Shown: piece by piece, positions 11,879-64,000 of the stretch
Layout: each line of letters begins with the position of its first letter
How positions within the stretch are numbered: position 1 is the stretch's first letter
The notes under the pieces: model-generated
Databases searched by the model: none
Seen by the model: the letters and a program-made list of their open reading frames with translations, nothing else
What the model was told of the DNA's origin: nothing
Position numbers and translations under genes: made by a program
Assembly: GCA_024704765.1 (NCBI GenBank)
Contig: JAKMXF010000210.1
Location: 496,001 to 560,000, forward strand
Direction of reading: 5' to 3'
DNA: 64,000 bases
Source: Oopsacas minuta
Lineage: Eukaryota > Animalia > Porifera

Positions 11879-14341
11879 ATGAATTGGAAGTTATCACATA
11901 CTAATGTGAAGATTGGATGCTTTATCATATCATGTCTCTGTTATATAAATTCTCTGTGGGGAGATTTTTGTTTTGATGATATTTCAGCCATTGTAGAAAA
12001 CAAAGATCTACGTCCAGGAACTCCCTTACTAAACCTATTGCAAAATGATTTCTGGGGTACACCCATGCATATAGAGGGCAGTCACAAGTCTTATAGGCCT
12101 TTAACTATATTTACGTTCAGAATTAATTACTATTTTGACGGGTTGCAACCCATAAGCTATCATATTGTTAATGTCCTATTGCATGGGATAGTGACTTATT
12201 TGTTCACTTCATTCGTTTCAGAAATTTCAGATAATTGTTGTATTGCTCTAATTTCAGGATTGCTTTTTGCAATTCATCCTATTCACACTGAAGCCATTGC
12301 TGGTCTAGTTGGAAGAGCTGAATCTCTCTCGGGAATATTCTTTCTATTAGTTTTATTTATTTACTCAAGAGCAAGTAATCACACTGGTTTGATTTATTGT
12401 ATAGAGATGGTATTATTGTATCTAGCTACGCTCTGTTCAATTTTAAGTAAAGAAGTAGGTATCACTGTGATTGCAATTTGCTGTGTCTACGATGCTCTAT
12501 ACACTGAAAAAATAGTCGTATTAAATTTCTTGTTGCCAACTTCTCCTATAGTCTGGTTTAAGAAATATAGTAGTATTTTGAAACGAATCACTCACCTACT
12601 CATTTTCACGCTTACTATATTATTCCTACGCATTAAGATAAACGGTCCAGGTCTACCGAGTTTTACACCATTAGATAATCCAGCTAATTATTCTCCATTT
12701 CCCACGCGTCAATTATCTTTTCTATATCTTTGTTTTATTAATACAGGGCTACTCTTCTGCCCTTCCTTTTTATGTGCGGACTGGACCATGCAAACAGTAC
12801 CTTTGATAGAATCCCCGTTAGATCCCAGAAATATCCTTACTTTACTCACATTTTCAGGTTACTTTATGCTTGGAATATGGGCCATTTCAGATAATACCTA
12901 CGACAAGAGGTTAGTATTAATGGCTCTGTCTATTATTATATTCCCTTATATACCGGCCTCAAATCTATTCTTCCCGGTAGGATTTGTAATAGCAGAAAGG
13001 ATACTATATCTACCCAGCATGGGGATGTGTTTATTGGTCGCATTGGGAGTAAATAAGTTAATGAAAATTAGAAAAGTTAAATATCTATGTTATCTATTCC
13101 TTTGTATAACCTGCTTATTCTACTGTACGAAAACAATGGTTAGAAACTTGGATTGGTCGAATGATTATTCACTTTTCAAATCGGGAATTAAAATAAATAA
13201 ACATAATGCTAAACTCTACAACAACTTAGGACATGTGTTTGAAAACCGTGAGCAATATCAAGAGGCAGAAGAGCTGTTCCTTAAAGCATCAGGTATCCAA
13301 CCGGACGATACTGGTTCTTGGATTAATCTAGGACGAGTTTTGAAAGCACAAAAACGTTATAACGAATCTGAGCTAGCATTAAAAACTGCCCTGCAGCAAA
13401 TGCCTAATATTACTGAGAAAGGTCAGTCGTTTAGAATTGCTCCTAATTTCTTGAATGTGTATTTTAACTACGCTAATCTGTTATCACAAAATCCTACACG
13501 TTATAAAGAGGCCGAGAATTATTATAAGACAACTCTACGAGTACGTCCTGATATGCCAGAAGCACACATGAACTATGGAAACTTGCTAATTAAAATTGGA
13601 GATTTTGATTCGGCATTGTCGCATTTTCAGATGGCTATTGACAAGAAACCAGATTACGCAGATGCCTATTATAACATGGCTACTACTTACCTTAAGAAGA
13701 AGGATAGTGCTACCGGCGAAAAGAATTTAAGGATAACATTATCTCTAGATCCTAACCACATACATGGGCTAGTTAATCTCGCCAACCTCTTACTCGAATA
13801 TGATACCTTAAAATCTCGTGATGAAGCAATGCTCTTATTCAAAAGAGTATTAGAGATTGATCCCAGCAATGAGCTAGCGTTGTTTAGCCTTGGTCTACTC
13901 TTCTCAGATGATGGCTTACACCAACAGGCAGAGGAAATGTTCTTACAGACAGTCAATGTAAATCCATTACATAAAAGCGCTCTATTCAACCTCGGATTTT
14001 ATGCTCTGACTTTCAAGAATTTTGTAAAGTGTATTGAGTACTTAGGTATACTTGTTGCAAACTATCCAGCCCATTTCCGTGGTATTTTCAATCTAGCGGA
14101 TTGTTATATGCATATTTCTGATAGAGAAAACGCGAAATTATACTATAAATTAACGCTTGAATTAGATCCCAACTTTACACCTGCTCTACACAATTTAGGT
14201 GTAGCATTGGCTCAAGAAAATGATTTTTTGGAAGCTATCGCTCTATTTGAACAAGTTTTGATACTTGAACCAAGTCACCAGAATGCTAAAATATATTTAG
14301 ACCTCTCGAAAAACGAGTTATATGGTAAATCTAAGCATTAG
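11879..14341 (+). CDS. TMTC3: Protein O-mannosyltransferase TMTC3-like (GT-C membrane domain + TPR repeats)
   Basis: FCFDDISAIVENKDL..NDFWGTPM..SHKSYRPL, CADWTMQTVPL and NAKLYNNLGH..QPDD..RIAPNFLNVY match the TMTC3 subfamily. Multiple TPRs; intronless. Confidence 0.9.
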   Translation: MNWKLSHTNVKIGCFIISCLCYINSLWGDFCFDDISAIVENKDLRPGTPLLNLLQNDFWGTPMHIEGSHKSYRPLTIFTFRINYYFDGLQPISYHIVNVLLHGIVTYLFTSFVSEISDNCCIALISGLLFAIHPIHTEAIAGLVGRAESLSGIFFLLVLFIYSRASNHTGLIYCIEMVLLYLATLCSILSKEVGITVIAICCVYDALYTEKIVVLNFLLPTSPIVWFKKYSSILKRITHLLIFTLTILFLRIKINGPGLPSFTPLDNPANYSPFPTRQLSFLYLCFINTGLLFCPSFLCADWTMQTVPLIESPLDPRNILTLLTFSGYFMLGIWAISDNTYDKRLVLMALSIIIFPYIPASNLFFPVGFVIAERILYLPSMGMCLLVALGVNKLMKIRKVKYLCYLFLCITCLFYCTKTMVRNLDWSNDYSLFKSGIKINKHNAKLYNNLGHVFENREQYQEAEELFLKASGIQPDDTGSWINLGRVLKAQKRYNESELALKTALQQMPNITEKGQSFRIAPNFLNVYFNYANLLSQNPTRYKEAENYYKTTLRVRPDMPEAHMNYGNLLIKIGDFDSALSHFQMAIDKKPDYADAYYNMATTYLKKKDSATGEKNLRITLSLDPNHIHGLVNLANLLLEYDTLKSRDEAMLLFKRVLEIDPSNELALFSLGLLFSDDGLHQQAEEMFLQTVNVNPLHKSALFNLGFYALTFKNFVKCIEYLGILVANYPAHFRGIFNLADCYMHISDRENAKLYYKLTLELDPNFTPALHNLGVALAQENDFLEAIALFEQVLILEPSHQNAKIYLDLSKNELYGKSKH

Positions 14342-52849: not shown

Positions 52850-54041
52850 ATGTCTTCGAGGAATGGTATTGGTCCAAATAGGATATGCCAGTTCAAGCTG
52901 GTATTACTCGGTATGTGTATATTGGATTTGATTGAATGTGACGATTGTATGCTACGCTTCCTTTGTTTTGGTTAGGAGAATCAGCTGTGGGAAAATCTTC
53001 ATTAGTCCTGAGGTTCGTCAAAGGGCAATTTCATGAATATCAGGAAAGTACAATTGGCGGTGAGTTCTTTTTCCTGTCACTTTTATGAATTATTTTACAT
53101 AGTTATTTTGTTTTTATCTTCTTTAGCTGCCTTCTTGACGCAGACAGTTAATTCAGATGATGTGACTGTTAAATTCGAAATCTGGGATACAGCGGGCCAA
53201 GAAAATATCCTCCCAACGCGTTATTTATACTTATAGTTTACAAATATTATGATTACGTATTTAGTTTTGATGAGTTGTAGGTAAAAATGGCACCTGTACC
53301 ATCCTACATAATTCAAAACTATCACCATTTTCGTTTTCCGCTGAGATCGAAATAATATCGAAATTTGGCTAAATATATTTATTATAGTAATTGTTTGATT
53401 CTATTTTCCTAAACTCGGTGTAAGGTTCCATTCCCTCGCCCCAATGTATTACAGAGGAGCCCAAGCTGCTATCGTAGTGTACGATATCACAAATGTCGTA
53501 AGTATAAGTTTTATCTACAGCTCTGATCCTTTTTGTAATTTATCTTCCTGTGTGTTTCTATAGGATACATTCACAAGAGCGAAAAATTGGGTAAAAGAAT
53601 TACAGCGTCAGGCAAACCCTGATATTGTAATCGCTTTAGCAGGGAACAAGGTAGATTTGGCAGGCAAGAGATCTGTAGAATTCACAGTAAGTAACTACCT
53701 TGATTCTATCAAACAAGTATTTATCTCATATATTAATCCATTCTGTTTGATCACAGGACGCGCAGAGTTACGCTGACGATAACTCGCTCCTTTTCATGGA
53801 GACGTCGGCCAAGACAGCTCTTAATGTAAATGAAATGTTTGTCTCAATCGGTGAGTTCATTCGCTAGATATAATTTGAGTTATCAATAATTAAATTTAAT
53901 AATTTCTTAGCAAAGAGATTACCCAAAAATGAACCAGCACCACGACCTCCCGGTCTGAGTCAAGTGGGTGGAGCAGGCACATCATTCCCACTTCACAAAA
54001 GTGGCAAGAAATCAAAAGAAGGGTGTTGCAATAAGCAATAA
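52850..54041 (+). CDS. RAB5: Ras-related protein Rab-5, 7 exons
   Basis: Exons 52850-52910, 52976-53059, 53127-53204, 53424-53497, 53564-53686, 53757-53850 and 53911-54041 give [53 protein letters not shown] and a CCNKQ C-terminus. Confidence 0.95.
53205..53423 (+). other. U12-type (minor spliceosome) intron with AT-AA termini in RAB5
   Basis: The 5' end is ATATCCTCC, and a U12-like branch site TTTCCTAAAC lies ~10 nt before the 3' end. Only the AT..AA join restores GAA A|GG TTC (E-R-F). No phase-compatible GT donor occurs before the in-frame stop. Confidence 0.8.
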
Positions 54042-62800: not shown

Positions 62801-64000
62801 TTGAAGCCACTAGCGGGTAATGTTCATAACGGACTGAGAATTCTATACACAGAAGATGAGCCTCTAGATCTTGCTGGGGTGTGTGACGTTACCAAACCAC
62901 AGACTGGAATTACGTTTTTGTGTCCGAAGAGCAGTGAAACTTCTAAACTTGATTATCCACGGTTGATTGGGGTGGATATCAGTGGATGTATATTCGAATT
63001 TGAGTGGTACACAAAGCTAGCCTGTACTGAAACAGGAACACCTGTGTCTACTCCATGTGCTTTCCAGGACCCTGTTAGTGGATTTGTATTCTCTTTATTG
63101 TCTCTAGAAGGTACAACACCAGTGAAATATGATGGTGAGTTATTTTATACAATAAAACATCATAGAAATGCCGTGAGCACTTGAATACTTGAAGCAAAGT
63201 TTCGCGAAGTTTCGTACCTGAAAGGATATGCGCAAGGGTGCTTATTCAGTCAGAAAATTAGCCACGTATGCTCGTGAATTACTTAATTAACTTTTGCTGT
63301 AAAATTGCGCAAAAAAAATGCCCACGACAGGGATCGAACCTATGACATTCGGCTTATTAGACCGACGCTCTAACCAACTGAGCTACGTAGACAAATATTA
63401 TATTTTAATTCTAATTCAAAACTTTGTTAGTTGTCTTTCCAGTTCATCTAGACAAAAAGACTGCCCCCGACAGGGCTCGAACCTGTGACCTTGGGCTTAT
63501 TAGACCCACGCTCTAACCGACTGAGCTACGAGGGCAGATAATATTCCTTTCCAATTCACCAATTTTTATATCATGTTACAATTACACCCTTTCTATAGAG
63601 AATACAAACGCTGACTCTCCTTTCTTCTACCTATCTATATGCTCTACTATTGACTCAGATCTCCTTCAATCTTCTATAAACCCAAAGTCTGGGGCTGTTC
63701 TTCTTTACCCAAATACTGTATCTGATGCTAAGAACTCGAGTTTAGGAGAAGCTAACTCAAACCTGTTGTACAGTGATAGTGAGCTAATACAGCTCAGATA
63801 CATTGAAGGAAGTGCATGTTCAAGTGGCAAGGTTATGTATTAATGTTCACTTCCTTCATGAATACAATTGTTATTATTCTTATCGTTTTTCAGAAATCAA
63901 CTCTAATCACCTTTGTGTGTTCACATCTTATAGCCTCGAGTGTGTCTTACATTAGCTCTCTGCCATCAGATGACACCTGTCTATTTGAGTTTGAATACAA
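59804..64000 (+). CDS. IGF2R: Cation-independent mannose-6-phosphate receptor (MPR300), multi-exon, 3'-truncated by the window edge
   Basis: Signal peptide followed by ~7 MRH repeats (YDLSPL..F.LN.C; C..CSY.F.W.T..AC) across exons separated by short introns. Confidence 0.88.
63319..63392 (-). tRNA. tRNA-Ile(AAT), copy 1
   Basis: 74-nt cloverleaf GTCTACG TA GCTC AGTTGGTTA GAGC G TCGGT CTAATAA GCCGA ATGTC ATAGG TTCGATC CCTGT CGTGGGC A, immediately followed by a T8 Pol III terminator. Confidence 0.9.
63462..63535 (-). tRNA. tRNA-Ile(AAT), copy 2
   Basis: 74-nt cloverleaf GCCCTCG TA GCTC AGTCGGTTA GAGC G TGGGT CTAATAA GCCCA AGGTC ACAGG TTCGAGC CCTGT CGGGGGC A, with a T5 terminator 3 nt downstream. 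Confidence 0.92.

Follow-up and report, generated by a model that had tools for sequence, protein, structure and literature searches.

U12-type introns with AT-AA termini are an established, if rare, class. AT-AA was the commonest non-canonical U12 ending in animals and plants in a pan-eukaryotic survey (Larue and Roy 2023, PMC10639083), and human and mouse genes with this ending were listed as early as 2006 (Sheth et al. 2006, PMC1557818). Introns of the A-type AT-AN group form an accepted class, and the splicing of A-type introns is less efficient in human cells (de Wolf et al. 2021, PMC8280824). The optimal distance from the branch point to the 3' splice site of U12 introns is given in a review as 11 to 13 nt. 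The premise of the first-pass annotation that the minor spliceosome tolerates AT-AA and AT-AG ends is borne out by these papers.

The closest described counterparts of intron 3 in the Rab5 gene of the sponge Oopsacas minuta, located in the analyzed window of 64,000 nt, are the AT-AA introns of human and mouse RASGRP4 and of human MSH3 (PMC1557818; PMC8280824; PMC10639083). In common with them, the sponge intron has an ATATCCT 5' splice site, a TCCTTRAY-like branch sequence that precedes the 3' end by about 10 nt and a terminal AA where AC would be canonical, and, as with most non-canonical U12 introns, its termini are one base off a canonical pair. It differs in the host gene, Rab5 of a hexactinellid, in the C at intron position +8 that matches a G of the sponge U6atac, and in an out-of-frame AG that abuts the AA. 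The literature searched on Rab5, sponge and AT-AA or AT-AG minor introns contained no description of the Rab5 intron. A U12 intron in the Rab5 switch II region appears to be undescribed in text, and intron databases may list it.

The Rab5 coding region was modelled by exon-by-exon translation at positions 52850 to 54041 of the forward strand, with seven exons and 214 codons. Exons 1 and 2 lie at 52850-52910 and 52976-53059, respectively; exon 3 (53127-53204) encodes 25 residues that end in WDTAGQE and contributes the A that opens an Arg codon, and exon 4 (53424-53497) supplies GG and then 24 residues. Exons 5 (53564-53686), 6 (53757-53850) and 7 (53911-54041) complete the frame, with the stop codon TAA at 54039-54041. 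The five introns other than intron 3 are all GT-AG and 60 to 67 nt each. Similarity searches and translations were run exon by exon, and the exons read singly translate into a typical animal Rab5. Among solved structures, the top matches were Rab5C/A/B for exon 5 (E 3e-17) and exon 6 (E 7e-12), with Rab22 and Rab21 well behind, and the fragment open reading frames (ORFs) matching exon 3 carry PF00071. A single Rab5 gene was found in this genome among its 40 loci with the WDTAGQE codon pattern. The genome had been called intron-poor; a mean of 1.59 introns per gene is given in the published genome paper, and the description does not hold for the Rab5 gene itself, with six introns in 214 codons.

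Intron 3 (53205-53423, forward strand) is 219 nt long, lies in phase 1 and splits an Arg codon as A|GG within WDTAGQE-R-FHSLAP, exon 3 ending in TGGGATACAGCGGGCCAAGAA plus A and exon 4 starting with GG at 53424. With its start set by the frame, the intron opens with ATATCCTC at 53205-53212, in agreement with RTATCCTY, and the 5' splice site ATATCCTCC (53205-53213) contains the exact RTATCCT core. Near the other end, TTTCCTAAAC occupies 53405-53414, 9 nt short of the intron end, and the last bases are GTGTAA. Within it, the putative branch-point sequence TTCCTAAAC (53406-53414) includes TCCTAAAC, which has one mismatch to TCCTTRAY; this mismatch counts somewhat against the U12 reading. A distance of 10 nt separates the likely branch adenosine, 53413, from the AA. 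Estimated simply from base composition, the joint chance of ATATCCT at the frame-forced start and TCCTWARY in the right 6-nt window is about 1e-7. The intron-terminal AA at 53422-53423 is the in-frame 3' splice site according to the reading frame, and an AG formed by the terminal A and the first G of AGG follows one base downstream at 53423-53424. On re-reading of the sequence, all the coordinates and motifs first noted for this intron were correct. Its sequence is single copy in the genome and its RNA structure is not unusual (z = -1.5), and readings of it as a repeat or an RNA gene were rejected.

By itself, the motif RTATCCTY shows no enrichment in the window (12 sites versus 12.4 expected), and a correctly spaced, matching branch motif accompanies one of these 12 sites, that of Rab5 intron 3, and none of the other 11. 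A second U12 intron considered at 12831 (ATATCCTT) was dismissed as a chance match because it falls inside an uninterrupted 820-aa ORF (11879-14341, forward strand). The N-terminal half of this ORF is hydrophobic and its C-terminal half is TPR-repeat-like by eye; the ORF is intronless, compared to the six introns of the nearby Rab5. A pair of tRNA genes separated by about 70 nt is located on the reverse strand at 63319-63392 and 63462-63535 (Rfam tRNA, 63 and 70 bits). Genome-wide, the pattern ATATCCTY...TTCCTTAAC gave 11 matches versus 22 in the reversed control, and the survey was dropped because it did not discriminate. Bacterial and archaeal genome contigs, in which contaminant sponge DNA was sought, contained no match to the intron pattern.

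The need for the AA end was analyzed by enumerating all junction pairs that keep WDTAGQE and HSLAP, match in phase and introduce no stops. Three of the pairs that have recognisable termini stand out. The junction 53204^53424 (AT-AA) restores Arg with the exact switch II spacing and is the only enumerated junction preserving WDTAGQE-R-FHSLAP. The junction 53204^53415 would set the end of a standard AT-AC intron at 53414, within TTCCTAAAC, and the protein would gain I-G-V ahead of Arg. This solution is compatible with the frame, free of stops and has the canonical A-type pair, but it would place three added residues in switch II, and a single residue follows E with no insertion at all 40 WDTAGQE loci of the genome and in every Rab5 fragment seen. 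Moreover, the AC at 53414 is only 1 nt from the sole good branch adenosine, and the next branch candidate, TGTTTGAT, has two mismatches and is 16 nt distant, leaving such an intron highly improbable. The junction 53217^53425 corresponds to a GC-AG intron of the major spliceosome (53218-53424) that uses the AG and puts N-I-L-P-T in place of Arg. Although also stop-free and in frame, it would require a very poor donor (AC|GCGTTA), lose the conserved Arg, alter the length of switch II and leave unused the perfect U12 5' site that precedes it by 13 nt, and it is scarcely credible. The products of both junctions are very unlikely because extra residues are absent from every WDTAGQE locus and Rab5 fragment. 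From the reading frame we infer that AT and AA are the termini actually used.

The position of the intron was compared with other Rab5 genes. A word search with a 67-aa ORF containing exon 3 returned 120 ORFs of other assemblies that represent Rab5 fragments, and at least 22 of these continue from WDTAGQE into NIL or NIP, consistent with A|ATATCC(T) starting at the same base. When metagenome contigs were searched with a DNA pattern, 15 matched, and the next exon was located in 14; all 14 have an AT-AC intron at exactly the same place, in phase 1 of an AGR codon. The 14 contigs represent three gene types. The introns of these Rab5-like genes (metagenome loci L005-L019; fragment ORFs P0001-P0005 and others) are like that of the sponge in position, phase and ATATCCT start. 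They differ in length (66 to 238 nt), in the G+C content of their genomes (45 to 61%) and in their end, which reads AC|GG or AC|GA, with AC where the sponge has AA. The comparison with other Rab5 genes proposed in the first-pass annotation returned the same position in the metagenome contigs and, as it appears, in the fragment ORFs. Within the sponge genome, Rab5 is the only one of the 40 WDTAGQE loci that has a phase 1 intron in the codon following WDTAGQE. The Rab5 U12 position is thus, as judged from these sequences, old and widely shared, with AT-AC U12 introns at this place in the Rab5 genes of distant eukaryotes, and given the common ATATCCT start and AT-AC ends elsewhere, a change of the final intron base from C to A in the sponge lineage is most likely.

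Several further features were observed around this site. The only other one of the 40 WDTAGQE loci with an intron within 3 bases of the Rab5 site is the Rab-like L059 (G000:C365:106490-106910), which has a U2-type GT intron two bases past WDTAGQE (AG|GTGAGG). In two of the three gene types of the GC-rich metagenome Rab5-like genes, a perfect TCCTTAAC lies 37 to 55 nt from the 3' end, compared to the usual 10 to 15 nt. L005, L009, L016 and L018 have a weaker GCGTTGAC at 9 nt besides the distant TCCTTAAC, and L008, L010, L014, L015, L017 and L019 have the distant TCCTTAAC alone, without a proximal branch motif. A second group of Rab5-like fragment ORFs (P0007, P0024, P0066, P0069, P0075, P0085 and P0105) reads WDTAGQG followed by intron-like text, as would suit a GT intron in phase 1 of the Glu codon that begins 3 nt before the U12 site. 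This group may represent a U12-to-U2 conversion via a nearby cryptic donor.

Since the assignment to the AT-AA subtype hangs on one base, an assembly or polishing error at 53423 was considered, in which case the true end would be AC, as in the same-position introns elsewhere, or AG after an indel, which would make it a canonical intron. Coverage of the assembly is 186x, polishing was done with Pilon (genome paper), the frame is intact as assembled, and AT-AA is a well-documented natural subtype. An error is therefore unlikely in view of coverage and polishing, and the chance of a canonical intron concealed in this way is slight.

Minor-spliceosome RNAs were searched in the genome contigs with Rfam models. 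Genes were found for U11 (103.1 bits), U12 (68.4 bits) and U6atac (66.2 bits; L002:1501-1600, G000:C309:397786-397885). A U4atac candidate (L004:1501-1617, G000:C321:145934-146050) scored 52.9 bits, 0.1 under the Rfam cut-off of 53, so a scan by cut-off only would wrongly report U4atac as absent. It was accepted because a 14-nt stretch of it, GTCCTTATCGAGGG, is perfectly complementary to the sponge U6atac in the stem region, compared to a maximum of 10 nt in 500 shuffles. Five matches to the zf-U11-48K domain were present in the genome. No profile match to CENATAC (PF14968) or PDCD7 (PF16021) was obtained in the genome, but the controls of this search were silent too, and the negative carries little weight. 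The earlier expectation that this genome keeps a minor spliceosome agrees with the three snRNA genes and the U4atac candidate.

The pairing potential of the intron with the sponge snRNAs was also analyzed. Bases +4 to +8 of the intron (UCCUC) can form Watson-Crick pairs with nucleotides 12 to 16 (GAGGA) of the sponge U6atac, and the intron segment UUUUCCU forms a 7-nt Watson-Crick match to AGGAAAA of the sponge U12, which keeps GUAAGGAAAA. The 5' splice-site-binding box of human U6atac is GAAAGGAGAGA. The sponge box reads GUGAGGAGAGA, with G facing intron position +8 where the human RNA has A, and the C at +8 of ATATCCTC therefore forms a Watson-Crick pair. From the change in U6atac, such introns of the species would be expected to have a pyrimidine (C or U) at +8 and a purine (A or G) at +9; the Rab5 intron has C at +8. 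This match between the changed U6atac and the intron base is a hint of snRNA and splice-site co-evolution in the sponge lineage. Against the U12 reading, the CC at +8 and +9 is unpaired with the AAAA of U11.

Taken together, the frame, the motifs, the snRNA genes, their pairing and the shared position support the proposal that Rab5 intron 3 is U12-type, and it very probably belongs to the A-type AT-AA subclass. We infer that it is removed by the minor spliceosome and that the AA site is used. In the proposed course, the ATATCCTC start would be recognised by U11 and then by U6atac, U12 would pair with UUUUCCU-AAAC, leaving the branch adenosine bulged about 10 nt from the end, and the second catalytic step would join exon 3 to the GG at 53424, yielding the Arg codon A|GG and restoring the invariant switch II spacing. 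The out-of-frame AG would be a by-product of the C to A change and probably a minor product at most. The placement of the AG speaks against the AA end, in that at 11 nt from the branch adenosine, versus 10 nt for AA, it is equally well or better placed.

The one-base frameshift predicted for use of the adjacent AG was reproduced in translation: the frame from 53424 reaches a premature TAG at 53475-53477 in exon 4, with three exon junctions downstream of it. It had been proposed that the choice between AA and AG tunes Rab5 output through NMD, that is, the minor spliceosome would use both AA (in frame) and AG (+1) at a regulated ratio and NMD would set the Rab5 level. Both sites are 10 to 11 nt from the likely branch adenosine, near the 11 to 13 nt optimum, the stop would lie ahead of three junctions, and A-type introns showed lower splicing efficiency in human cells in the cited work. 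The AG, however, lies one base downstream because the terminal A is followed by a G that the AGG codon for Arg requires; it is forced by that codon when the intron ends in A, and its presence therefore needs no selection. Furthermore, the review treats the use of alternative 3' sites by U12 introns as a possible error and the choice of 3' site as error-prone, with AT-AG combinations disfavoured, and the same-position introns elsewhere end in AC without such an AG. Regulated tuning is a speculative reading, unsupported by these data and rated as very improbable. As the AG is as well placed as the AA, its occasional use, giving an NMD-type transcript, is plausible. That glass sponges use the choice and conserve it as an NMD-coupled dosage control of early endosome traffic is more doubtful still. 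If it were true, minor-spliceosome activity would set the Rab5 level. NAGNAG-type acceptors and AS-NMD in major introns likewise involve two adjacent acceptors, one giving a premature stop; the sponge case differs in the minor spliceosome, in the 1-nt shift and in the putative use of the second site.

The intron also has consequences for annotation. The TopHat plus Braker/Augustus toolchain is not known to handle AT-AA junctions by default. Predictors and mappers limited to GT-AG, GC-AG and AT-AC would miss Rab5 intron 3, so that its host gene might be given a wrong model or seem to be "missing". The analyzed assembly comprises 61,460,524 bases in 365 contigs, and the genome paper reports 365 scaffolds, about 61 Mb and 36% G+C. 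A human origin of the contig was rejected, as its sequence does not resemble human DNA. The toolchain named above was the one applied to the genome (genome paper), and mis-modelling of Rab5 in the deposited annotation, as anticipated in the first-pass annotation, is for that reason plausible. Such mis-modelling would be relevant since gene loss is a headline claim for this genome.

Rab5 intron 3 is an unexceptional representative of a rare but known intron type, located at what appears to be an old shared position, and it leaves the current understanding of minor splicing unaltered. With it, a non-canonical minor intron is cleanly documented in a non-bilaterian animal, and Rab5 is presented as a gene with a probably old U12 intron inside switch II.
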